Part shown: positions 30,979 to 45,751 of the stretch, one piece after another | Layout: each line of letters starts with the position of its first letter | Numbering within the stretch: the first letter of the stretch is position 1 | Assembly (NCBI GenBank): GCA_965240325.2 | Contig: OZ251243.1 | Span: 930,001 to 994,000 of the forward strand | Reading direction: 5' to 3' | Length of the DNA stretch: 64,000 nucleotides | Origin: Rebecca billardiae RCC1528 | Taxonomy: Eukaryota > Protista > Haptophyta | Translations under genes and position numbers: made by a program | The notes under the pieces: model-generated | Seen by the model: only the letters and a program-made list of their open reading frames with translations | The model's database searches: none | What the model was told of the DNA's origin: nothing

Positions 30979-31645
<667 letters not shown>

Positions 31646-32735: not shown

Positions 32736-34072
32736 TTAGGCGCCGGGCCCGGTGCTCAATACGCTGTCGACGCTCGAGACGCGCTCCAGTCTCCGTTTGC
32801 TTGCCATGCTGTACTCGACCATGCCGGCCAGCTTGTGCTCAGCGCACCGGCTGGCGCGCGCGTTGCCCGGCATGCCGAATGAGGGCCCCTTGGTACAGCC
32901 TGCGTGATCACACTCTGCCTTCTTCTTCAAGCGGACCATGCCAGCCAGCTTGTGCTCCGCGCACCAGCTGGCGCGCGGAGCGCCCGGCATGCCAAGCAAA
33001 GGCCACTTGGTGCAGCCGGCGTGATCACACTTGGGGTTCCTCACATCGACCATGCCAGCCAGCTTGTGCTCAGCGCACCGGCTGGTGCACGCGTCACCCG
33101 GCATGCCGAACGAAGGCCACTTGGTGCAGCCTGCGTGATCACACTTTGGCTTGTTCAAGCGAACCATGCCAGCCAGCTTGTGCTCAGCGCACCGGCTGAC
33201 GCGCGCTTCGCCCGGTATGCCGAATGAGGGCCGCGTGGTGCAGCCGGCGTGCTCACACTTGCGGCTTATCACGTTGACCATGCCGGCCAGCTTGTGCTCG
33301 GCGCACCGGCTGGCGCGCGCGTCACCCGGCATGCCGAACGAAGGCCCCTTGGTGCAGCCTGCGTGATCACACTTGCGGTTCACCACGTCGACCATGCCAT
33401 CCAGCTTGTGCGTAGCGCACCGGCTGGCGCGCGCGTCGCCCGGCATGCCAAACGAAGGCTGCTTGGTGCAGCCGGCGTGATCACACTTGCGGATCATCAC
33501 GTTGACCATGCCATCCAGCTTGTGCTCGGCGCACCGGCTGGCGCGCGCGTCACCCGGCATGCCGAACGAAGGCCCCTTGGTGCAGCCTGCGTGATCACAC
33601 TTGCGCTTCACCACGTCGACCATGCCATTCAGCTTGTGCGTAGCGCACCGGCTGGCGCGCGCGTCGCCCGGTATGCCGAATGAGGGCCGCGTGGTGCAGC
33701 CGGCGTGATCACACTTGCGGTTCCTCACGTCGACCATGCCATTCAGCTTGTGCGTAGCGCACCGGCTGGCACGCGCGTCGCCCGGCATGCCAAGCGAAGG
33801 CCACTTGGAGCAGCCGGAGTGATCACACTCGGGGTTCCTCACATCGACCATGCCAGCCAGCTTGTGCTCGGCGCACCGGCTGGCGCGCGCGTCGCCCGGC
33901 ATGCCGAATGAGGGCCGCGTGGTGCAGCCGGCGTGATCACACTTGCGGTTCACCACGTCGACCATGCCATCCAGCTTGTGCGTAGCGCACCGGCTGGCGC
34001 GCGCGTCGCCCGGCATGCCAAACGAAGGCTGCTTGGTGCAGCCTGCGTGATCACACTCGGGCCTGTTCCCAT
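32736..34072 (-). CDS. EsV-1-7-type Cys/His repeat protein, 11 x 38-aa repeats (possible 1-nt frameshift just after ATG 34072; first in-frame ATG 34016)
   Basis: Tandem CDHAGCTxxPSFGMPGDARASRCAxHKLxGMVxxxxxx units (114-bp period) match the EsV-1-7 motif pattern C-x4-C...C-x2-H..GMV. Confidence 0.85.
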
Positions 34073-34335
34073 GCCGGCTAGCTGGTGCTGCGGCTCGGCC
34101 CGCTGCCCCACTCGTCTCGTCTCGTCTCCCGGCTGCCCCGGCCGAGAGGCCGACCGTAGTGCGCTGGCAGAGCCAAAGTAAGTTCAAAGACGTGGTATTT
34201 TGTTATGGACTCGCCGAGACGCCGACTTGACAGAAAGGCTGCGCCCGAGCACGCCGGCTCGCGAGCATCGCCCACGGCCGCGGGATTGCATCGTTGCGTC
34301 CGGCGGCTCGGCGGGCGACGGCAGACTCAAGCCGC

Positions 34336-35985
34336 ATGAGCGAGTTCATCCGCGTCGCGACGGAGTCGGACCTGAAGGCGGCCGGCAACCGGCTCCTTGT
34401 CCAGGCGGAAGGGCGCTACCTCGTAGGCGCCCGGCGCGCATGTTGAGCGTGCGCGCACCTCAGCGCACGGGCGCGCTGCGCTGACACGCGCTCCCTGTGC
34501 ACCACCCGTCGTGCGCGGGCGCAGGCGCTCGTCCGGCACGGCGAGGATGTCTTCGCGATTGACGCGACGTGCTACCACATGGGCGGCCCGCTGCTCCACG
34601 CAGACATCGAGGATCTCGCCGAGTTTGGCCCGACAATCATCTGCCCCTGGCACCGGTATCAGATCTCGCTGCGGACGGGCGACGGACTGTACCAGAACAT
34701 GCAGCGGCAGACGTGCTCGAAAGGGTTGCGCCAGCGCGTGCACGAGGTCCAGCTGCGCGGCGGGTACATTGCCGTCCGCCTCTCCGCCGGCGCAGGCGCA
34801 GAGAAGGCCGAAAGCGACACCTACGCGTTCAAGCCTCCGCCACCGTCTGGCGGCGGGGCGCAGCAGCCGCCGCCAGGGCGCTCGGGGGACGTGCTGCGCG
34901 CGGGTGCGGCGGGAAAGCGCAGCTGCGGCGGCGCGCTGCCAGCGGGCGGGCCGGGCGGCGCGCCTTTGCCGCCCTCCGTCGCCACCGACGTCGCGCGCTC
35001 CATGGCGGGCGCGGACGGGCGCGCGCCGTGGGCGAGGGCTGGCGGCCCGCCGCTGCCGCCGCGTCTGCCGCCCAGCGCCGCCCGCCCCGGCGACGCGGGT
35101 AGCGCGCCGTCGGCGTCGTCGGCCGGTGCGGCGAGCGTTGGCCCGAGCGTAGGCGGCATGGTGGGCGGCGTCTTCCAGCAGCTCGGCCAGCAGCTCTTCG
35201 GCCAGTGCCAGCCGCAGCAGACAGGAGACGCGCGCTCAGACTGGGTGCGCGTCACAGTGGCGCGCTCGCGGCCCGTCGGCCGCCGCACCGTGCAGCTGAC
35301 GATCAGGGGCGCGCTCCCAGGCACCGACGCGAGCGTGTGGCGACGTGGCTCGCACGTGATGGTGATGCTCCCGCCGCACGCCGCCGTGCCAGACTCAGGC
35401 GCCGTCGAGCGCCCGTACACGCCCTACGTCCTTCCGGGCAGCAGCGGCGCGTTCGAGCTCGTCGTCAAGGCGTATGACGGCGGCGCCGTCTCGCCGCACC
35501 TGGCGGGGCTCGGGCCGGGGGCGCCGGTGCTGGTCAGGGGCCCGCTGGGCGGCGTGGCGCCGAGCGCGTGGGACGGCGCCGCCGCCTTCGGGCTGCTCGC
35601 CGGCGGGACGGGCATCACGCCGATGCTACAGCTGATCTACGGCCTGATCCACGAAGCCGGGCCGGCCGGACAGATTCCTCCGGTGCGCCTTCTGTGCTTC
35701 CACCGGGCCGAGGCGGACGTGCTCCTCAGGGCTGAGCTCGACGAGCTCGCGGCGCGGCACGCGGCACTCGAGGTGTACTACTCGCTCTCCGACCCGCCAG
35801 CCGGCTGGAAGCACGGCGTTGGCCACCCGAGCGCCGAGGGGCTGCGGACACGCCTGCCGGCGCCGACCGACGCGGGCGGGCGTGTGCGCATCTTCATCTG
35901 CGGGCCGCCGGCCTTCAACGACGCGGTGCTCGGGCTCTGCGGCGACCTGGGGTACGCCGAGCGGCAGGTACACGTCTACCAGTAG
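34336..35985 (+). CDS. Fusion of RFESD-like Rieske [2Fe-2S] domain and cytochrome-b5-reductase-like FAD/NAD(P)H domain. Exons 34336-34422, 34525-35985
   Basis: Spliced AIDATCYHMGGPL...IICPWH; RPYTP, VVKAY, GGTGITPM, CGPPAFN; intron 34423-34524. Confidence 0.85.
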
Positions 35986-36289
35986 CGAGCGTGTGCGCAC
36001 CAGCACGGCGTGCTGCGTGACTAACTGATCGTCAGCGCACGCCAATGCTGATGCTGACGATCGGATGCTGCCATTGCTGGGTCGCGTGAGTAGTAACAGT
36101 CGATCATATATCGTCGTCTCATTAGAATCTGTTGTCAAAGGAATCGCCAATCTACAGTGATTTCCAATTTCCAATCCAACATTTTACTCGCAGTCACACA
36201 GTGGCGGCGCGACCGCTGCGGCGGCGCTCGCACAAAATCCTCCAAAATCAACCTGAACCTCATCCTAAAATACAGCAGGACAGCATGGC

Positions 36290-39200
36290 TGGCGGCGGCA
36301 TCTGGAAGCATTCTAGATGCTTCCGAAACTCGTGAACGAAACATGAGCCGATCACACAAAACACGCTGAGCTCACCACCGCAAACAAGAGCCGAAGCCGT
36401 CGACCGACCTCGCGACCGTCAAGCCTCGAGACGCGTTCCCTGACATGCTAGCACGGTGCTGGGAGAACTTGGGCAAGGATGGAGACGACGAGAACAGCGG
36501 CAAGGACGTGAACGGCCATCAGCCCGCCCCAGTTGCTCCCCTCATTGGGTTGAAGCCAGGCGTGGCCGAGCGCGCGGCAATGCCGCGCGGCTCATCGGCG
36601 GTTGCGCGCAAGCGCACGCCAGACTACCTCGCGGCTGCCCTGAGGGGCATGCAGGCTGAGAAGAACCGGCAAGGCGAGAAGCTCACGCTTCTCCGCAAGC
36701 CCATCTCCAGCGCCTCCGGGCCTGGCAACATCGCTGACCTGAACTCAGGCAGCATCGTGTCGTATGCGCGCAATGCTGCATCGCACGCAAGGCCTCGAGC
36801 CGACATCAAGGATCACCTTGAGGAGGAGGTTCGCGCACAGCGCGGTGAGGAGGAGCGTTGCCGCTCGCATCCCCCGCCATCGCGCCACTCCATCCGCACG
36901 CACGTCGTTGCGCAGGGGATCTCAACAACTACCGCCCGGGACTCTGCGCCCGCGAGCGCGGTTCAAGAGCGCGCGGCTGAGAGCCCGCAGCTCAAGGAGT
37001 GCCTTGCGGCCTCCGAGTCATCGAACGAGGTCACCGAGCGTTCCGGGGCAGATGTAGCGCTCGACGCTGCTGCCGCTGATGCCGCTCCGACCGTCGAGGC
37101 CCTCGAGCCTGCCGACGCTGCTCCGCGTGCTGGCCACCTGGCCGCCGCCTGTGACAGCGCAGGTCGTGCCACCGCCGCAGTCAGTCTGCAGCCTCGCGCG
37201 CATGACACTGTGTCTGAGTCTGACCGATCGAACGAGGACATTAGCACCGATGAGTGCGACGCAAACGACCTGTATGGTCTGGCAGAGCAAACTATGCTCC
37301 AAGATGCTACGACACGTGACTCTGTCACAGCGAGCTCAAGCATCAAGTCAGCGGCCGCATTTATTATTGATGCGCCTGACCCAAACAAATACGTTTACTG
37401 GCGGCGGCATCTGGAAGCATTCTAGATGCTTCCGAAACTCGTGAACGAAACATGAGCCGATCACACAAAACACGCTGAGCTCACCACCGCAAACAAGAGC
37501 CGAAGCCGTCGACCGACCTCGCGACCGTCAAGCCTCGAGACGCGTTCCCTGACATGCTAGCACGGTGCTGGGAGGACTTGGGCAAGGATGGAGACGACGA
37601 GAACAGCGGCAAGGACGTGAACGGCCATCAGCCCGCCCCAGTTGCTCCCCTCATTGGGTTGAAGCCAGGCGTGGCCGAGCGCGCGGCAATGCCGCGCGGC
37701 TCATCGGCGGTTGCGCGCAAGCGCACGCCAGACTACCTCGCGGCTGCCCTGAGGGGCATGCAGGCTGAGAAGAACCGGCAAGGCGAGAAGCTCACGCTTC
37801 TCCGCAAGCCCATCTCCAGCGCCTCCGGGCCTGGCAACATCGCTGACCTGAACTCAGGCAGCATCGTGTCGTATGCGCGCAATGCTGCATCGCACGCAAG
37901 GCCTCGAGCCGACATCAAGGATCACCTTGAGGAGGAGGTTCGCGCACAGCGCGGTGAGGAGGAGCGTTGCCGCTCGCATCCCCCGCCATCGCGCCACTCC
38001 ATCCGCACGCACGTCGTTGCGCAGGGGATCTCAACAACTACCGCCCGGGACTCTGCGCCCGCGAGCGCGGTTCAAGAGCGCGCGGCTGAGAGCCCGCAGC
38101 TCAAGGAGTGCCTTGCGGCCTCCGAGTCATCGAACGAGGTCACCGAGCGTTCCGGGGCAGATGTAGCGCTCGACGCTGCTGCCGCTGATGCCGCTCCGAC
38201 CGTCGAGGCCCTCGAGCCTGCCGACGCTGCTCCGCGTGCTGGCCATCTGGCCGCCGCCTGTGACAGCGCAGGTCGTGCCACCGCCGCAGTCAGTCTGCAG
38301 CCTCGCGCGCATGACACTGTGTCTGAGTCTGACCGATCGAACGAGGACATTAGCACCGATGAGTGCGACGCAAACGACCTGTATGGTCTGGCAGAGCAAA
38401 CTATGCTCCAAGATGCTACGACACGTGACTCTGTCACAGCGAGCTCAAGCATCAAGTCAGCGGCCGCATTTATTATTGATGCGCCTGACCCAAACAAATA
38501 CGTTTACTGGCGGCGGCATCTGGAAGCATTCTAGATGCTTCCGAAACTCGTGAACGAAACATGAGCCGATCACACAAAACACGCTGAGCTCACCACCGCA
38601 AACAAGAGCCGAAGCCGTCGACCGACCTCGCGACCGTCAAGCCTCGAGACGCGTTCCCTGACATGCTAGCACGGTGCTGGGAGGACTTGGGCAAGGATGG
38701 AGACGACGAGAACAGCGGCAAGGACGTGAACGGCCATCAGCCCGCCCCAGTTGCTCCCCTCATTGGGTTGAAGCCAGGCGTGGCCGAGCGCGCGGCAATG
38801 CCGCGCGGCTCATCGGCGGTTGCGCGCAAGCGCACGCCAGACTACCTCGCGGCTGCCCTGAGGGGCATGCAGGCTGAGAAGAACCGGCAAGGCGAGAAGC
38901 TCACGCTTCTCCGCAAGCCCATCTCCAGCGCCTCCGGGCCTGGCAACATCGCTGACCTGAACTCAGGCAGCATCGTGTCGTATGCGCGCAATGCTGCATC
39001 GCACGCAAGGCCTCGAGCCGACATCAAGGATCACCTTGAGGAGGAGGTTCGCGCACAGCGCGGTGAGGAGGAGCGTTGCCGCTCGCATCCCCCGCCATCG
39101 CGCCACTCCATCCGCACGCACGTCGTTGCGCAGGGGATCTCAACAACTACCGCCCGGGACTCTGCGCCCGCGAGCGCGGTTCAAGAGCGCGCGGCTGAGA

Positions 39201-39616
39201 GCCCGCAGCTCAAGGAGTGCCTTGCGGCCTCCGAGTCATCGAACGAGGTCACCGAGCGTTCCGGGGCAGATGTAGCGCTCGACGCTGCTGCCGCTGATGC
39301 CGCTCCGACCGTCGAGGCCCTCGAGCCTGCCGACGCTGCTCCGCGTGCTGGCCATCTGGCCGCCGCCTGTGACAGCGCAGGTCGTGCCACCGCCGCAGTC
39401 AGTCTGCAGCCTCGCGCGCATGACACTGTGTCTGAGTCTGACCGATCGAACGAGGACATTAGCACCGATGAGTGCGACGCAAACGACCTGTATGGTCTGG
39501 CAGAGCAAACTATGCTCCAAGATGCTACGACACGTGACTCTGTCACAGCGAGCTCAAGCATCAAGTCAGCGGCCGCATTTATTATTGATGCGCCTGACCC
39601 AAACAAATACGTTTAC
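36290..39616 (+). repeat. Three tandem 1109-bp units (3' half of LTR + 5' gag)
   Basis: Units 36290-37398, 37399-38507 and 38508-39616; ORFs recur with a period of 1109. Confidence 0.95.
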
Positions 39617-41236
39617 CCCAAAATTACCAGCCTCACGATGGCTTCCGAAGCCGAGCTGCTCGCCACGAGCGACACAAGCAGCCGCGAGATGACCGCCGCA
39701 GAGACGGCAGAGTCCTCGTCTGGCACGTATCGACTCGCGTCGAACGTAGGAAGCGCATGCGATGCAGGGGGGGCATCATACACCTGCTTGACGGCAAAGC
39801 CGCAGCAAAACCAAGTTGGCGAGCGCGACGCGCGTGCGCATGCATCAGCTGCGTCAGCCATCACAACGCCACACTCTTGCAAGGAAGAGTATTCCGCCGA
39901 AGCTGCCGCGGATGCACATGCATCACCGCTGGACAGAACGAGCGTGAAGAAGCCCAAAGAAGGCACCACAGCCTCGACGAGGGTCACTCCTCGCTCGAAG
40001 GTAGAGCGCGAATCGCCACAGAGCGCGCGCGACACATCGACCAATGCACTTGAGTCGAAGAAACGTGACTGGATAGTCATCGAAGGAGGAGTCACAGACT
40101 CTAATCCAACCAAGAAGGAACGTGTGTTCATGGCACGCGAATCCTCGGCAGGAGTGGATACACCCGCCACACACAAGCTGACACAGTCGGCTCTGAAATC
40201 CAAGCGCGCGGTACACAGCGCGATACGGGATGCACTCGCAGAAGTGAGCACCTACTACAAGGGCAAATCCTCAGATGTCACACCGGACATAATGGAGCCC
40301 AAGGATAGCAAGCTATCCGGCTTTCAACTCATTGCCAAAGACAAATGGGTGAAAGACGCAGCCAAAATCGATCCATACAAGGCTGACAACGCTGACGCCA
40401 ACAAGATCGGATCGGTCTACGATCGATCTGCGGCAGCGATATTCAAGCAGCTGAAGGACTCTATCGAGCCTCAGTTATTCGCCTATCTGGAATCGAAGCT
40501 GCACATCAGCGATCCGACCAAGAACTACTTGGATCTGGCGCTGCTGCTACAGATATTTGAGCGCGAGCTCAAGATCACAACTATGTCCGAACTCAGGGAT
40601 GAATTCCTGAAGTTATACCCGACAAAGGTGTCGCCCATTGGCGCATCGGACATTATCAAGAAATCCGTCGAGCAAGTCCGCTCATCTCGATATGGGAATC
40701 TGGACGATGCTACGATGTTGGTCTTCAAGCTGTATAACAGCATGCACGACCATCCCCAAGTCTACGAGTCAGTTATCTCGCACTTCGGAGCGCTCACGCC
40801 CGAGCAATGTGTGGATAACACTGACCAGATATTGGCCCAGATGGAAGATGCCTACAAACGGCACGGCTCAATGAAGCTACTCCATCAGAACAATACCAAG
40901 GGGAGAGAGACCGAAAACTATTCCAAGATACGCCAAAATGCTGATTATCAGCAAGGCACGCGGCGACGCGGTGACTTTGAGGGCGCCGAAGTCTTCGCCG
41001 CTCAGGCCCAAAAGGCTCCAGCCAATGGCGAGAGCGGGCCGAATAACTCGGACACCGGCAAACGGTGCACTCACTGTGGTCTCAAGAACCATACTGCCCA
41101 GCAGTGTTGGAGGCTCCACCCAGAGCTACGCCCCAAGGCCAACAATTACAACAAAGGCAAAAACAAGGGAGCCAACAAGTTTCCCAAGGAGCGTATCCAT
41201 TTCCTGGATATTCCTGCTCCGGATGCCTATGATTAA
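38663..41236 (+). CDS. gag: Gag-like protein with CCHC zinc knuckle
   Basis: CTHCGLKNHTAQQC (CX2CX4HX4C) near the C-terminus; lower GC; inside LTRs. Confidence 0.85.
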   Translation: MLARCWEDLGKDGDDENSGKDVNGHQPAPVAPLIGLKPGVAERAAMPRGSSAVARKRTPDYLAAALRGMQAEKNRQGEKLTLLRKPISSASGPGNIADLNSGSIVSYARNAASHARPRADIKDHLEEEVRAQRGEEERCRSHPPPSRHSIRTHVVAQGISTTTARDSAPASAVQERAAESPQLKECLAASESSNEVTERSGADVALDAAAADAAPTVEALEPADAAPRAGHLAAACDSAGRATAAVSLQPRAHDTVSESDRSNEDISTDECDANDLYGLAEQTMLQDATTRDSVTASSSIKSAAAFIIDAPDPNKYVYPKITSLTMASEAELLATSDTSSREMTAAETAESSSGTYRLASNVGSACDAGGASYTCLTAKPQQNQVGERDARAHASAASAITTPHSCKEEYSAEAAADAHASPLDRTSVKKPKEGTTASTRVTPRSKVERESPQSARDTSTNALESKKRDWIVIEGGVTDSNPTKKERVFMARESSAGVDTPATHKLTQSALKSKRAVHSAIRDALAEVSTYYKGKSSDVTPDIMEPKDSKLSGFQLIAKDKWVKDAAKIDPYKADNADANKIGSVYDRSAAAIFKQLKDSIEPQLFAYLESKLHISDPTKNYLDLALLLQIFERELKITTMSELRDEFLKLYPTKVSPIGASDIIKKSVEQVRSSRYGNLDDATMLVFKLYNSMHDHPQVYESVISHFGALTPEQCVDNTDQILAQMEDAYKRHGSMKLLHQNNTKGRETENYSKIRQNADYQQGTRRRGDFEGAEVFAAQAQKAPANGESGPNNSDTGKRCTHCGLKNHTAQQCWRLHPELRPKANNYNKGKNKGANKFPKERIHFLDIPAPDAYD

Positions 41237-42075
41237 CTATCAAGGCAGGGCATAGCCCAATAACAAGGTCCAAGATCAAGGCCAAAGAGTGAACACATGG
41301 TGCAAATAAGCCCAGGACTGACTCGGGTTACCCATAACCGTCACACGGAAGTCCCAGCACATGACCCGTATCCTGGCATTGGCAACCATTACTGACTCCA
41401 ATTCACTCATGCACACAGATGCACAAACAATACCAAGCCCAAAATCACTCATAATCCAAGCTTAGTCCTCACAGACGAGCGCATATTGGATTGAGAGGGG
41501 GTGTCAAAGGAATCGCCAATCTACAGTGATTTCCAATTTCCAATCCAACATTTTACTCGCAGTCACACAGTGGCGGCGCGACCGCTGCGGCGGCGCTCGC
41601 ACAAAATCCTCCAAAATCAACCTGAACCTCATCCTAAAATACAGCAGGACAGCATGGCTGGCGGCGGCATCTGGAAGCATTCTAGATGCTTCCGAAACTC
41701 GTGAACGAAACATGAGCCGATCACACAAAACACGCTGAGCTCACCACCGCAAACAAGAGCCGAAGCCGTCGACCGACCTCGCGACCGTCAAGCCTCGAGA
41801 CGCGTTCCCTGACATCTGTCAATTACTGCTGAATTAGACTCTATATCATCATAGCTATCATATCCGCGCCGCATCACGCGCGGATCCTGATCGCACGACC
41901 GTGACGACGCATTTGGCCATCATCGTCAAGTTCTATTATTTAAAATATATTTCCCATCTGATCAATATATATATATATATGGATATATATATATATATAT
42001 ATTGATCGGGTAGTGTCGAAGTCGAGCGCAGCTGAGCGTCGCCAGCGGACGCCTCTAGACATACTGCTAAGTATA

Positions 42076-43710
42076 CTATCTGCTGCGTCGTAATCGCGCG
42101 CGGCGGTGCGCCACCATGCCTCCGCCGTATGTCGGCCCGAGCTTAGTGGCGTCAGCTATGTAGCGCAAGCCCTCCGCCGGCGTCCAGAAGTGCTTCGGCG
42201 AGTTGGTCGTGCGCGGTCGCGTGGGCACGTGCGGGAGGCCCAGCGTGCGGTTCTTGCGCAGCGAGAGCTCGACCAGCAGCAGCTCGAACGCGCGGCCGCG
42301 CTCGCCATAGTCAAACGCGCGCCGCCAGCGCAGCAGCTCGGCGCCCATCCGCTCCACCTGCTCAGGCGTGACGGCGCGCACGACCTCGGCGAGCCGCGCG
42401 CCCTCGCGCTCGGGCAGCTTGAGCGTGAAGCGGTGGAAGTTGACCAGGTGCTCGAACGCGAACGAGATCGGGTCGGACAGCACCACGGGGATGCAGCCGG
42501 CGAGGACCGCGTCGAAGAAGCGCTTGGTCCACGGCGTGTTGCCGCGCGGGATGATGCAAAAGATGGAGCGGCGCAGCTCGGAGGCGTACGTGCTCGCCTT
42601 CTCGGCGAAGACGAAGTCGGCCTCGTGCTGCAGCCGCGCGCGCAGGTCACGCCGCAGCACGTTCGGCTTGAAGCGGCGGTGCCCCTCGGCATCCTTGAGG
42701 GCCGCGTCCATGCCGCCTCGGAAGAAGCCGAGAATCGATTTCGAGCCCGGCTGTGCGCTGGCCACGTCCGGCACGTTGGTCACCCAGCCGGGGACGACGA
42801 TGTCGTGGCCGTAGCGGAAGTAGTCGGCCTCGCGGTCGCCCTCGGCCACGATGAAGATCGCCTCCTTCAGCCGCGGCACCGCCGCCCACCCCGGCGGGTC
42901 CGGCAGCATCGATGCGCCGATGCCGCTCATGAAGAAGAACACGTGCCGGTCTGGCCTCTGCCGCCACGCCTCGTGCGTCTCGAGCTCGGCGGTGAGGCGG
43001 CGGAAGGCGCGGCCGAGCGCGGAGAGCTTGCCGTGCGCCGCGTAGTTCAGGTAGCACTTCGCGAGGAACGGCACGATCAGGAAGTCTGCCGCCGCCGGGT
43101 CGTCGGTCGCGTACTCGGAGGCTCGAATCTTCTCAATCAGGTGGTAGTCGCCCGCCCACTGAAACCGCGTGCACTTCGGGTACTGGCGCACGAGCTCGGA
43201 GGCGTCGGCGAAGTGCAGCGTGTACGTGTACAGCTTGAGGCCCCGGTCCACCGTCGCGATCACCTCGTCCAGGGACGGCTCGTCGTCGTGACCGGCGGGC
43301 TCTGGCAGCAGCTCGCCCGCAACGCTCAGCACCGGAGTGCCGCGATCTGCTGCGAGTGCGCGCTCCGGAAGGGGCGCTCGCCCGATGCGGGAGACGTCGC
43401 GGCTTCCACGCTGTCGTGTGGAGTCCAAGGCAGCCTGCTCGGCCGCACGATCCCTCGGCGCTGCGCCGGGTACGACGCCGCGGGCCTCGCGCGCGTCAGT
43501 TCCGACTCCCAAAGCCACGGTTCGATTGCCGCCCCCGCGTCGCCTGCCCATGGCAGCATCCTCGTGCAGCACGACTTCGTAGTGCTGCACTCGACCAGGC
43601 GCGTCATGGCTGAACGGTCGCACGGGCCCGCCGGTCCCAAGCGCAGCCAGAAAGCCGGCCGCCAGGCCGAGGCCGGCGGCCATGCACAGGCGCGCCCTGC
43701 TCGGCGCCAT
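42076..43710 (-). CDS. Exostosin-family glycosyltransferase (GT47)
   Basis: N-terminal TM anchor, TDDPAAADFLIVPF, DIVVP, FFRG, SIFCIIPRG, FFDAVLAGCIPVVLSD. Confidence 0.9.
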   Translation of the reverse strand: MAPSRARLCMAAGLGLAAGFLAALGTGGPVRPFSHDAPGRVQHYEVVLHEDAAMGRRRGGGNRTVALGVGTDAREARGVVPGAAPRDRAAEQAALDSTRQRGSRDVSRIGRAPLPERALAADRGTPVLSVAGELLPEPAGHDDEPSLDEVIATVDRGLKLYTYTLHFADASELVRQYPKCTRFQWAGDYHLIEKIRASEYATDDPAAADFLIVPFLAKCYLNYAAHGKLSALGRAFRRLTAELETHEAWRQRPDRHVFFFMSGIGASMLPDPPGWAAVPRLKEAIFIVAEGDREADYFRYGHDIVVPGWVTNVPDVASAQPGSKSILGFFRGGMDAALKDAEGHRRFKPNVLRRDLRARLQHEADFVFAEKASTYASELRRSIFCIIPRGNTPWTKRFFDAVLAGCIPVVLSDPISFAFEHLVNFHRFTLKLPEREGARLAEVVRAVTPEQVERMGAELLRWRRAFDYGERGRAFELLLVELSLRKNRTLGLPHVPTRPRTTNSPKHFWTPAEGLRYIADATKLGPTYGGGMVAHRRARLRRSR

Positions 43711-43771
43711 CGCCCGCCGTGATCGCGCCGGGCCGGCGGGCCGTGGGACCGGAATCAACAAGACAGGAGCG

Positions 43772-45751
43772 ATGGTGTGTGATCACACCGGCTGCACCAC
43801 GCGGCCTTCGTTCGGCATGCCGGGCGACGCGCGCGCCAGCCGGTGCGCTGAGCACAAGCTGGCTGGCATGGTCAATGTGAAGAGCCGCAAGTGTGATCAC
43901 TCCGGCTGCACCACGCAGCCCTCATTCGGCATGCCGGGCGACGCGCGCGCCAGCCGGTGCGCTGAGCACAAGCTGGCCGGCATGGTCGATGTGAGGAGCT
44001 CCAATTGTGATCACGCCGGCTGCACCAAGTGGCCTTCGCTTGGCATGCCGGGCGACGCGCGCGCCAGCCGGTGCGCGGAGCACAAGCTGGCTGGCATGGT
44101 CCGCTTGAAGAAGAAGGCAGAGTGTGGTCACGCCGGCTGCACGACGGGGCCTTCATTCGGCATGCCGGGCGATGCGCGCGGCAGCCGGTGCGCTGCGCAC
44201 AAGCTGGCCGGCATGGTCGACTTGAGGAGCCTCAAGTGTGATCACGCCGGCTGCACCAAGTGGCCTTCGTTTGGCAAGCCGGGCGACGCGCGCGCCAGCC
44301 GGTGCGCTACGCACAAGCTGGATGGCATGGTCGACGTGGCGAACCGCAAGTGTGATCACGCCGGCTGCACCAAGCAGCCTTCGTTCGGCATGCCGGGCGA
44401 CGCGCGCGCCAGCCGATGCGCCGAGCACAAGCTGGCTGGAATGGTCGGCTTGTACAAGCCCAAGTGTGATCACGCAGGCTGCACCAAGGGGCCTTCGTTT
44501 GGCATGCCGTACGACGCGCGCGCCAGCCGGTGCGCTGAGCACAAGCTGGCTGGCATGGTCGATATGGTGAACCGCAAGTGTGATCACTCCGGCTGCACCA
44601 CGCGGCCCTCGTTCGGCATGCCAGGCGACGCGCGCGCCAGCCGGTGCGCCGAGCACAAGCTGGCTGGCATGGTCAACGTGATAAGCTCCAAGTGTGATCA
44701 CTCCGGCTGCACCAAGCACCCTTCGTTCGGAATGCCGGGCGACACGCATGCCAGCCGGTGCGCTACGCACAAGCTGGCCGGCATGGTCGGCTTGAGGAAG
44801 CCCGAGTGTGATCACGCAGGCTGCACCAAGTGGCCTTCGTTTGGCATGCCGGGCGACGCGCGCGCCAGTCGGTGCGCCGAGCACGAGCTGGCTGGTATGG
44901 TCCGCTTGAGCAAGCCCAAGTGTGATCACGCCGGCTGCACCAAGTGGCCTTCGTTTGGCAAGCCGGGCGACGCGCGCGCCAGCCGGTGCGCTACGCACAA
45001 GCTGGATGGCATGGTCGACGTGGCGAACCGCAAGTGTGAGCACGCCGGCTGCACCAAGCAGCCTTCGTTCGGCATGCCGGGCGACGCGCGCGCCAGCCGA
45101 TGCGCCGAGCACAAGCTGGCTGGAATGGTCGGCTTGTACAAGCCCAAGTGTGATCACGCAGGCTGCACCAAGCAGCCTTTGTTCGGCATGCCGGGCGACG
45201 CGCGCGCCAGCCGGTGCGCCGAGCACAAGCTGGCTGGCATGGTCCGCTTGAACACGCCCGATTGTGATCACGCAGGCTGCACCACGCGGCCCTCATTCGG
45301 CATGCCGGGCGACTCGCGCGCCAGCTGGTGCGCTGCGCACAAGCTGGCTGGCATGGTCAATGTGAGGACATCCAAGTGTCATCATGCCGGCTGCACCGCG
45401 CGGCCTTCGTTCCGCATGCCGGGCGACTTGTGTGCCAGCCGGTGCGCCGAGCACAAGCAGGCCTGCATGATTCATGTTCGGCCTGGTGCGCACAAGCGTG
45501 GGCTGGAGCAAGCCATGGGCGACGAGGTGCAAACGAGCACCGCCAAGCGACAGGGCAAGCGCACCAGGAGCACAGCCGCAGCGTCGGACGCCACAGCGCA
45601 GCCGCAGTCGCAGCTGGCGCCGCTGGTCACAGCGCGCGCCGTGCTCTGGCGCTCGAATGGCAAGGTCTACGGTGATGTGCATCCGCAAGCAAGAGCTTCC
45701 AGCGCAGACGGGCCGATAAGACCCGTCGTCATGGCGAGGAGGGTCTACTGA
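43772..45751 (+). CDS. EsV-1-7-type Cys/His repeat protein, 15 x 38-aa repeats plus basic C-terminal tail
   Basis: MV followed by 15 tandem CDHAGC...HKLAGMV units; tail contains KRQGKRTR. Confidence 0.88.
   Translation: MVCDHTGCTTRPSFGMPGDARASRCAEHKLAGMVNVKSRKCDHSGCTTQPSFGMPGDARASRCAEHKLAGMVDVRSSNCDHAGCTKWPSLGMPGDARASRCAEHKLAGMVRLKKKAECGHAGCTTGPSFGMPGDARGSRCAAHKLAGMVDLRSLKCDHAGCTKWPSFGKPGDARASRCATHKLDGMVDVANRKCDHAGCTKQPSFGMPGDARASRCAEHKLAGMVGLYKPKCDHAGCTKGPSFGMPYDARASRCAEHKLAGMVDMVNRKCDHSGCTTRPSFGMPGDARASRCAEHKLAGMVNVISSKCDHSGCTKHPSFGMPGDTHASRCATHKLAGMVGLRKPECDHAGCTKWPSFGMPGDARASRCAEHELAGMVRLSKPKCDHAGCTKWPSFGKPGDARASRCATHKLDGMVDVANRKCEHAGCTKQPSFGMPGDARASRCAEHKLAGMVGLYKPKCDHAGCTKQPLFGMPGDARASRCAEHKLAGMVRLNTPDCDHAGCTTRPSFGMPGDSRASWCAAHKLAGMVNVRTSKCHHAGCTARPSFRMPGDLCASRCAEHKQACMIHVRPGAHKRGLEQAMGDEVQTSTAKRQGKRTRSTAAASDATAQPQSQLAPLVTARAVLWRSNGKVYGDVHPQARASSADGPIRPVVMARRVY

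Follow-up and report, generated by a model that had tools for sequence, protein, structure and literature searches.

Two genes encoding tandem arrays of EsV-1-7 repeats, here called gene 1 and gene 2, lie on opposite strands of the window, the whole 64,000-nucleotide stretch of DNA analysed in this study (Table 1). Repeat dissection gave a period of 38 aa for both, interrupted in each gene by a single 39-aa unit that carries an extra linker residue, and TRF delimited 114-bp arrays at 32815-34057 in gene 1 (10.9 copies, 85% matches) and at 43777-45469 in gene 2 (14.8 copies, 84% matches). Read in order, the residue dyads at repeat positions 8-9 are KQ, TR, KW, TR, KG, KQ, KG, TR, KW, KW and KG in gene 1 and TR, TQ, KW, TG, KW, KQ, KG, TR, KH, KW, KW, KQ, KQ, TR and AR in gene 2; these strings, the positions of the arrays, their 11 and 15 repeats and the linker examples listed in a first-pass annotation of the same DNA were all reproduced exactly. 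The encoded arrays are strongly basic, with net charges of +27 and +38 and pI values of 9.2-9.4.

Table 1 Features of the two repeat genes in the window.
Feature	Position	Strand	Basis
Gene 1, 11 EsV-1-7 repeats and a 20-aa tail	32736..34187	minus	ORF, translation, Pfam PF19114
Gene 1 array, 10 units of 38 aa and 1 unit of 39 aa	32799..34055	minus	repeat dissection, TRF
Gene 2, 659 aa, 15 EsV-1-7 repeats and an 86-aa tail	43772..45751	plus	ORF, Pfam PF19114
Gene 2 repeat array, 15 units	43778..45490	plus	repeat dissection, TRF
256-bp block, about 2.25 repeats, copy 1	44233..44488	plus	exact-run search
256-bp block, copy 2	44917..45172	plus	exact-run search; one mismatch to copy 1

The ATG of gene 2 directly precedes repeat 1; an alternative in-frame ATG lies upstream at 43682, where a start would overlap a divergent GT47 ORF. 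Exact-protein look-up with both possible starts returned no match, and Pfam recognised no domain in the tail of gene 2. For gene 1, an ATG frame check found no in-frame ATG upstream of repeat 1, and enumeration yielded 134 formally possible GT-AG introns at the 5' end, an outcome uninformative about where the gene starts. The first-pass annotation had described gene 1 as intronless with its start at ATG 34072: the array stands, but this ATG is read in a different frame from the repeat ORF, and, with no in-frame ATG ahead of repeat 1, 'intronless' is not shown.

Ordinary cellular genes (DHHC, ASD, photolyase, PaO-type Rieske, RAP and GT47) are present in the window and rule out a viral insertion at this locus, while the unrelated flanks of the two genes rule out a simple segmental duplication. 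The gene neighbouring the array was found solely on two ~2.1-kb Logan contigs, which we rejected as evidence of transcription because a retained intron-like segment and a break at the first repeat identify them as genomic DNA.

Family membership and predicted module

Both proteins belong to the EsV-1-7 family: against Pfam EsV_1_7_cys (PF19114; gathering score 25 bits), gene 1 scores 514.8 bits (E 1.4e-158, 11 stretches) and gene 2 scores 678.2 bits (E 1.2e-209, 15 stretches). A further Pfam match, to Meis_PKNOX_N at 41.5 bits, is a summed-repeat artefact in which not one stretch passes alone. The pattern C-x4-C-x16-C-x2-H occurs in 26/26 units, with C1, C6, C23 and H26 invariant and all 104/104 metal-ligand residues thus intact; the codon of C6 varies synonymously. 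Given the invariance of these Cys and His residues, each 38-aa unit is probably a small module that binds zinc through Cys/Cys/Cys/His ligands. Periods of 38 and 37 aa also dominate among 120 homologues.

The AF2 repeat model is non-helical, nearly all coil with short strands, and a 4-repeat model (pTM 0.41) gives no confident prediction of inter-repeat geometry. A sequence search of the PDB found no match, and the 4-repeat model had no significant fold match in PDB Foldseek, AFDB Swiss-Prot or VIA wide; its top AFDB match, non-significant, is the N-terminus of Arabidopsis WRKY19. EsV-1-7 repeats have a CxxxGC knuckle in common with the WRKY19-type zinc finger (PF24906), which gives weak co-matches on EsV-1-7 arrays (49 bits in the family protein P0014, 11.5 bits in the window), but the window repeats score below the threshold of that family and any relationship is distant at most.

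Repeat variation and selection

Differences among the 26 repeats cluster at codons 8-9, 25, 29 and 33-38, the linkers being the most variable part of the repeat. The concentration at 8-9 and 33-38 proposed in the first-pass annotation is confirmed statistically; codons 25 and 29 had been seen there just as (E/T) and (A/D/N) alternatives. In pairwise comparisons, the scaffold has a pN/pS of 0.33, codons 33-38 one of 1.43 and codons 8-9 one of about 17. When substitution events were counted on a tree of repeats, the variable codons had 76.5 N : 11.5 S and the scaffold had 48 N : 49 S (Fisher p = 7e-8). Purifying selection acts on the scaffold (omega about 0.3; p = 9e-9 against neutrality), and pN/pS and the tree counts agree with the earlier picture of a constrained scaffold bearing variable positions that are not so constrained. 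Codons 8-9 show a significant nonsynonymous excess (20 N : 0 S, p about 0.012); the linker is statistically indistinguishable from neutral (omega about 1.3, not significantly >1). All variable codons together give omega 1.73 (p = 0.058).

Within the dyad, position 8 carries an old dimorphism of two types, K and T, which goes together with synonymous markers and also occurs in viral relatives. Homoplasy at codon 9 may stem partly from recombination among repeats and not from repeated selection. An earlier caveat, that codon-9 variation could in part reflect CpG deamination, proved weak: the window has a CpG observed/expected of 1.26, and the CGG codon is retained at position 22 in 22/26 repeats versus 7/26 at position 9 (p = 6e-5), which together rule out deamination as the main cause. 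A short-query protein search for same-species paralogue fragments found none, the best identity being 58%.

Gene 2 contains a near-exact duplicated block (Table 1), and its repeats g2_5/g2_6 differ from g2_11/g2_12 by 0 and 1 nt; the block pair arose recently, by duplication within the gene or by gene conversion. Repeat comparison and the exact-run search likewise uphold the view that a small set of residues is reused in differing orders through module shuffling. Unequal crossing-over and gene conversion, within and between paralogs, would change the arrays by reshuffling a small stock of module variants, as in tandem C2H2 zinc-finger genes.

Relatives of the arrays

A profile search of public data recovered 9,468 clusters of EsV-1-7 proteins at 50% identity. 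When the five most variable positions were taken from each of 152 foreign arrays, position 9 appeared among them most frequently (41%), followed in order by 11, 7, 36 and 35; for 36 homogeneous arrays the ranking was 11, 9, 36, 35 and 25; of the dyad, position 9 alone is hypervariable family-wide. Transcripts of array-only cellular homologues are known from other protists (MMETSP transcript P0043) and from brown algae.

Most relatives are more than arrays. Among 262 sampled family proteins, 214 (82%) continue after the array with a conserved C-terminal zinc ribbon and a further domain, whose motifs RPD, ExDExQH and RxNPD are near-invariant, and at 64/77 giant-virus loci in IMG/VR the array and the nuclease-like domain occupy one ORF. 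The fused domain has no sequence match in Pfam or the PDB. Its AF2 model (pLDDT 86.9, pTM 0.77) retrieved almost exclusively PD-(D/E)xK nucleases among the Foldseek top 50 (best E 2.5e-3), and VIA-align superposed it on the DUF559-like endonuclease 3hrl (Z 7.8, 92/94 residues aligned), the catalytic domain of the homing endonuclease I-Bth0305I (Z 7.7, 96/98) and Vsr (Z 5.8), middling fold matches that all remain at Z <8; RAP/FASTK modules, which act on RNA, are also among its structural neighbours. The fused domain is accordingly predicted, from this model, to adopt a Vsr/DUF559-like (PD-(D/E)xK) endonuclease fold. Enzymes of the I-Bth0305I type are built in the same order, with a DNA-binding region at the N-terminus and a Vsr-like nuclease at the C-terminus (PMC3239194).

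Searched in every frame of the window, an HMM of the fused domain matched nothing except the repeats, and gene 1 and gene 2 appear to be nuclease-less relatives of the giant-virus array-endonuclease proteins. Their nearest database relative, P0009 (55% identity), has the same PGDxxASRCAxHKLxGM scaffold and carries the nuclease domain; it adjoins an RNR small-subunit gene on a contig of 66% GC.

Discussion

EsV-1-7 is one of the largest gene families of brown algae, where it includes the developmental regulator IMM, and is widespread in giant viruses. The literature assigns EsV-1-7 proteins no function, and none of them has been shown directly to bind DNA; neither position-specific hypervariability nor nuclease fusion is described for the family in the searchable literature. 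Hypervariable positions shared across lineages, together with the viral nuclease-like fusion, lead to a concrete hypothesis of modular DNA targeting. Since in most relatives a Vsr/PD-(D/E)xK-like nuclease domain follows the array, the array would target DNA, and EsV-1-7 repeats probably read DNA by virtue of this association; because neither gene 1 nor gene 2 has a nuclease domain, the argument reaches them through their relatives. We are evenly divided on whether the window arrays are modular DNA binders, nuclease-less relatives of the giant-virus array-endonucleases built from reshuffled modules. If so, they would bind DNA as strings of modules, the conserved basic scaffold providing general affinity and a few surface positions (mainly 9, then 25/29 and 35-36) setting the preference of each module. 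No regular DNA-tracking geometry can be proposed, as the 4-repeat model lacks both a fold match and a confident pTM.

Variable modules of this kind could also tune contacts with partners other than DNA. That the arrays are LIM- or B-box-like zinc modules for protein or another ligand, with the variable positions adjusted to protein partners, seems to us unlikely: LIM, AN1 and WRKY19-type zinc modules make up most of the weak, non-significant structural neighbours found for the 4-repeat model, EsV-1-7 proteins figure in published work as developmental regulators with no assigned biochemistry, and variable linkers are compatible with beads on a string, but the prevalence of the nuclease-like fusion among sampled relatives points to a DNA ligand, as does the strong positive charge of the arrays. 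Binding of RNA in place of DNA is a poor candidate, and the least probable of the readings considered here. The modules are basic units of CCCH type and RAP/FASTK modules occur near the fused domain in structure space, yet the best matches of that domain are DNA endonucleases (DUF559-like, I-Bth0305I, Vsr and restriction enzymes) and Pfam reveals no similarity of the repeats to known RNA-binding CCCH fingers.

A different kind of explanation would have the genes be non-functional or drifting remnants of virus-derived array-nuclease genes, in which relaxed constraint and minisatellite-like turnover produced the pattern and the arrays have no recognition role in the host. The absent in-frame start codon of gene 1, the missing nuclease domain and a linker omega of about 1 all fit such remnants, and open frames are easily kept in window DNA of 65% GC, as a 372-aa antisense ORF inside gene 2 illustrates. 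Against this stand the purifying selection on the scaffold among repeats, the full set of metal ligands, frames that are open across 1.4-2.0 kb in both genes and the transcription of array-only cellular homologues in other protists and brown algae, so that we judge decay distinctly improbable.

Reading the arrays as modular DNA binders invites comparison with established recognition systems. Within the EsV-1-7 family proper (PF19114; Ectocarpus IMM, EsV-1 ORF 7 and the brown-algal expansions), gene 1 and gene 2 have the same C-x4-C-x16-C-x2-H repeat and 37-38-aa period, the same array-only layout without other Pfam domains, a like occurrence in clustered, expanded families and giant-virus relatives; they differ in the length of their arrays (11 and 15 units versus a typical 5-9) and in their host, a GC-rich alga with plastid-type genes and not a brown alga. 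Tandem C2H2 arrays of the KRAB-ZFP/PRDM9 type likewise encode small zinc modules in minisatellite-like arrays that are reshuffled by unequal recombination and show a nonsynonymous excess at few positions, an excess that here is significant for codons 8-9 and not for the linker. In contrast to them, the modules described here have CCCH ligands and 38 aa, no zf-C2H2 Pfam match, no predicted beta-beta-alpha fold and no effector domain, and the linker is their most variable part instead of a conserved one.

The first-pass label 'TALE-like' survives as an analogy only. TALE proteins, like PUF and PPR proteins, string together near-identical repeats of ~35 aa with a small set of variable residues at fixed positions, but Pfam and fold searches revealed no sequence or fold similarity to any of the three, TAL repeats had no Pfam match at E <= 0.01 in the window genes, and the AF2 module is zinc-type and non-helical, unlike the two-helix TALE repeat of 33-35 aa. 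TALE variation is essentially limited to one di-residue within a constant inter-repeat geometry; here codons 25, 29 and 33-38 vary as well, the model (pTM 0.41) does not predict packing into a solenoid, and the variability of the linker is opposite to the situation in both TALE and C2H2 arrays. With the EDxHD/Vsr-like (I-Bth0305I) and DUF559-type endonucleases, most array relatives have in common the layout of an N-terminal targeting region and a C-terminal nuclease fold; the targeting region of the relatives is, however, a zinc-repeat array and not NUMOD/HTH, the viral domain is a predicted nuclease, and the window genes have none.

More broadly, EsV-1-7 arrays might constitute an unrecognised natural modular DNA-recognition system, by which viruses aim nucleases and from which algae domesticated nuclease-less binders, a proposal that we advance tentatively and consider rather unlikely. 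Each 38-aa module would then read a short DNA element via position 9 (11 in relatives) and positions 35-36; giant viruses would use the arrays to aim Vsr-like homing-type nucleases, and the algal versions, gene 1 and gene 2 included, would form large, fast-shuffling families of DNA binders without a nuclease. If true, this would amount to a new protein-DNA recognition scaffold, and it would point to selfish nucleases of viruses as the source of algal developmental regulators. The window arrays are among the most homogeneous sampled (core identity 81% versus a median of 49%), and the two genes offer useful test material in that their modules are nearly identical except at the candidate specificity residues.

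Two homogeneous EsV-1-7 arrays on an algal chromosome

Nearly the whole of each array's open frame consists of one repeated unit, matching EsV_1_7_cys (PF19114) with E values of 1.4e-158 (gene 1) and 1.2e-209 (gene 2) and recurring with a 114-bp period at 84–85% matches (Tandem Repeats Finder) in both arrays. The locus is an additional member of the known EsV-1-7 family, whose domain the published literature, as far as searchable, regards as possibly a novel zinc finger, its function unknown. C1, C6, C23 and H26 are present in all 26 units (C-x4-C-x16-C-x2-H); H3 is likewise invariant in these units but not across the family. Among 75 arrays scored for internal homogeneity, the two rank at the top, with a core identity of 81% against a median of 49%, and no further EsV-1-7 units were found within the 64-kb window. 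The proteins are basic (net +27 and +38, pI 9.2–9.4). A Pfam match to Meis_PKNOX_N ('TALE/MEIS homeobox'), which exceeds the gathering cut-off when each protein is scored in full (41.5 and 30.4 bits), was rejected as an artefact of summed weak repeat matches, as no single stretch passes. Antisense ORFs of up to 372 amino acids within the arrays (for example, 44153–45271, minus strand, among other antisense frames) are what GC-rich repeats free of stop codons would be expected to contain, and they do not count as evidence of genes.

Features of the array locus
Feature	Positions	Strand	Content
Gene 1 open frame	32736–34187	-	11 EsV_1_7_cys stretches (ORF list, Pfam)
Gene 1 partner	34336–35985	+	Rieske/FAD/NAD cytochrome-b5-reductase-like; first exon and ~100-nt intron before long ORF
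LTR-like element	36289–41957		Between the two array genes
Gene 2 partner	42076–43761	-	GT47 exostosin-type glycosyltransferase
Gene 2 open frame	43682–45751	+	15 EsV_1_7_cys stretches (ORF list, Pfam)

In gene 2 an ATG at 43772 immediately precedes repeat 1; a second in-frame ATG lies at the start of the open frame (43682), but a start there would make gene 2 overlap the divergent GT47 ORF. Ahead of repeat 1, the gene 1 frame lacks any ATG, and the ATG at 34072, taken as its start in the first-pass annotation, is in the wrong frame. Introns exist in this genome, as in the neighbouring reductase gene, which matches its Pfam model from profile position 44 onward only and has its upstream exon and intron readable in the sequence. 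Given the missing ATG and the presence of introns, the description of gene 1 as intronless is unproven; enumeration yields 134 formal GT-AG solutions for a 5′ exon, and gene 1 may be a 5′-truncated copy.

Relatives carry a nuclease-like domain

When the non-repeat segments of 262 family proteins were clustered, a single C-terminal cluster dominated; its alignment contains a zinc ribbon, after which the motifs D, RPD, ExDExQH, E, R and RxNPD are nearly invariant. The domain has no Pfam match and, the ribbon excepted, no sequence match in the PDB. In an AF2 model of the domain (pLDDT 86.9, pTM 0.77), the top 50 Foldseek matches are almost all PD-(D/E)xK nucleases (R2 RLE, McrC, Bax1, Hjc and restriction enzymes), with E from 2.5e-3 upward. 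The best VIA-align matches span entire small domains: the DUF559-like endonuclease 3hrl (Z 7.8, 92/94 residues, rmsd 2.6), the I-Bth0305I catalytic domain (Z 7.7, 96/98 residues) and Vsr (Z 5.8), values that are middling on the tool's own calibration. The modelled domain is probably, though not certainly, a Vsr/DUF559-like PD-(D/E)xK nuclease fold. I-Bth0305I-type homing endonucleases share the layout of the array fusions, with an N-terminal DNA-binding region and a C-terminal Vsr-like nuclease (PMC3239194).

The domain HMM matches 214 of the 262 proteins, and in IMG/VR the domain shares an ORF with at least three EsV-1-7 units at 64 of 77 loci. By the same HMM, the named cellular homologues (Nannochloropsis, Coccomyxa, Botryococcus, Mesotaenium, Chrysoparadoxa and one MMETSP transcript) do not have it. 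Both window genes also lack it: searched against all frames of the window, the HMM matches nothing except the repeats. P0009, the closest relative in the databases, carries both the nuclease and the subfamily scaffold of the window arrays. It lies on a compact, densely coding 15.2-kb contig (L080, JGI 3300034050; 66% GC) beside an RNR small-subunit gene and two EsV-1-7 genes that consist of arrays only, with 4 and 5 repeats; the contig resembles a giant virus of high GC content or a viral insert. Most EsV-1-7 arrays carry this conserved zinc-ribbon plus Vsr/DUF559-like domain; it lacks a Pfam model and would deserve its own family definition.

Variable positions and their selection

A dissection of the repeats reproduced exactly the strings of dyads (codons 8–9 of the repeat) and the linker examples (codons 33–38) of the first-pass annotation, which had read them as fixed hypervariable positions. 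The scaffold is constrained and the dyad and linker are not, as the scaffold omega and the variable-codon counts indicate (Fisher p = 7e-8, scaffold versus variable codons); positions 25 and 29, given at first pass only as the alternatives (E/T) and (A/D/N), vary as well. For the variable codons pooled, omega is 1.73, not significantly above 1 (p = 0.058). The signal of positive selection is nominal, confined to the dyad and subject to the caveat that recombination between repeats can produce homoplasy.

Substitution by repeat region; omega is derived from change counts on the repeat tree
Region	Pairwise pN/pS	N : S on tree	Omega
Scaffold, 30 codons	0.33	48 : 49	0.3 (p = 9e-9 below neutral)
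Linker, codons 33–38	1.43	56.5 : 11.5	1.3
Codons 8–9	about 17	20 : 0	undefined (p about 0.012)

Part of this variability could have been mutational, as the earlier caveat of CpG deamination at codon 9 proposed. The window has a CpG observed/expected ratio of 1.26 and the arrays one of about 1.05, which gives no hint of CpG decay. Codon 22 retains CGG in 22 of 26 units, whereas codon 9 has it in 7 of 26 (p = 6e-5), and GGG, which five units carry at codon 9, arises by transversion. The pattern at codon 9 cannot be put down to mutation bias.

A profile built from four repeats matched 9,468 protein clusters (50% identity, E ≤ 1e-3), 2,204 of them at E ≤ 1e-30, with homologues at 30–57% identity to gene 2 from metagenomes, giant-virus MAGs and scattered algae. 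In 41% of 152 foreign arrays position 9 ranked within the five most variable, more often than any other position; next came 11, 7, 36 and 35. Among the 36 foreign arrays of highest homogeneity the order was 11, 9, 36, 35, 25, 24 and 33. The window's variable positions (9, 25, 29 and 33–38) thus match those that vary within arrays family-wide. R/Q/I/H recur at position 9, and KH, KS, VS, VN, KN, RN and IS at 35–36. The i, i+2, i+4 spacing suggests that positions 7, 9 and 11 lie on one face of an extended segment.

Arrays shuffled from a small stock of modules

The variable-site table resolves the units into mosaics of a few linked blocks (codons 8–11, 24–29 and 33–38). At codons 10–11, TR units mostly have CCC and TCA as synonymous markers, so TR and K-x (dyads starting with K) are old unit types rather than repeated inventions; their alternation recurs in P0008, a nuclease-bearing relative. 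Within gene 2 a 256-bp block (44233–44488) is repeated at 44917–45172 with one mismatch, repeats 1 and 6 of gene 1 differ by 1 nt, and the two 39-aa units, repeat 10 of gene 1 and repeat 3 of gene 2, differ by 5 nt. The sequences flanking the two genes are unrelated. Unequal crossing-over and conversion, acting on a limited stock of module variants, explain why a small residue set is reused in changing order, as correctly noted at first pass. In this the arrays behave more like tandem C2H2 zinc-finger genes than like TALEs.

Repeat structure and candidate function

An AF2 model of four repeats from an 80-row alignment (pLDDT 82, pTM 0.41) is nearly all coil with short strands; single units are modelled confidently, their mutual arrangement is not. 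It has no significant match in the PDB (Foldseek, VIA-align) or AFDB Swiss-Prot, the best, non-significant AFDB match being the N-terminal WRKY19-type finger region of Arabidopsis WRKY19; Zf_WRKY19 co-hits in Pfam are weak, and the repeats have no PDB match by sequence. The repeat is neither a TALE, PUF or PPR solenoid nor a C2H2 finger.

Of the TALE-like programmable binder first proposed, the arrays and their variation stand and nucleic-acid binding is plausible by association with the nuclease-fused relatives, but the TALE analogy and a code remain conjectural. The reading favoured here is that the two genes, which lack the nuclease, encode array-only EsV-1-7 proteins: candidate DNA binders built as strings of basic zinc modules, each perhaps tuned at a few surface positions. 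They offer clean test material for the open question of EsV-1-7 function.

Genomic surroundings

The window is ordinary algal chromosome, with DHHC, aspartate-semialdehyde dehydrogenase, Sel1, photolyase, PaO-type Rieske oxygenase and RAP genes, and the two array genes each face a cellular neighbour head-to-head across a very short interval. The LTR-like element contains three perfect tandem copies of a 1109-bp unit (36289, 37398 and 38507), and the same ORF begins in every one of them; the last copy continues into an 857-aa gag-like ORF (38663–41236) with a CCHC knuckle and no Pfam match. A copy of the first 300 nt, 66% identical, occupies 41658–41957. Long, pure (AT)n and (AC)n microsatellites of 68, 77, 56 and 23 units (30979–31644) lower GC to ~50% immediately downstream of gene 1. 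Two Logan contigs (L001/L002; ERR14847151, ERR14847148) match 34029–36160 with one SNP; as they retain the intron and end inside the first EsV-1-7 repeat, they are short-read genomic assemblies that failed to resolve the arrays, and they derive from this strain or one very close to it.
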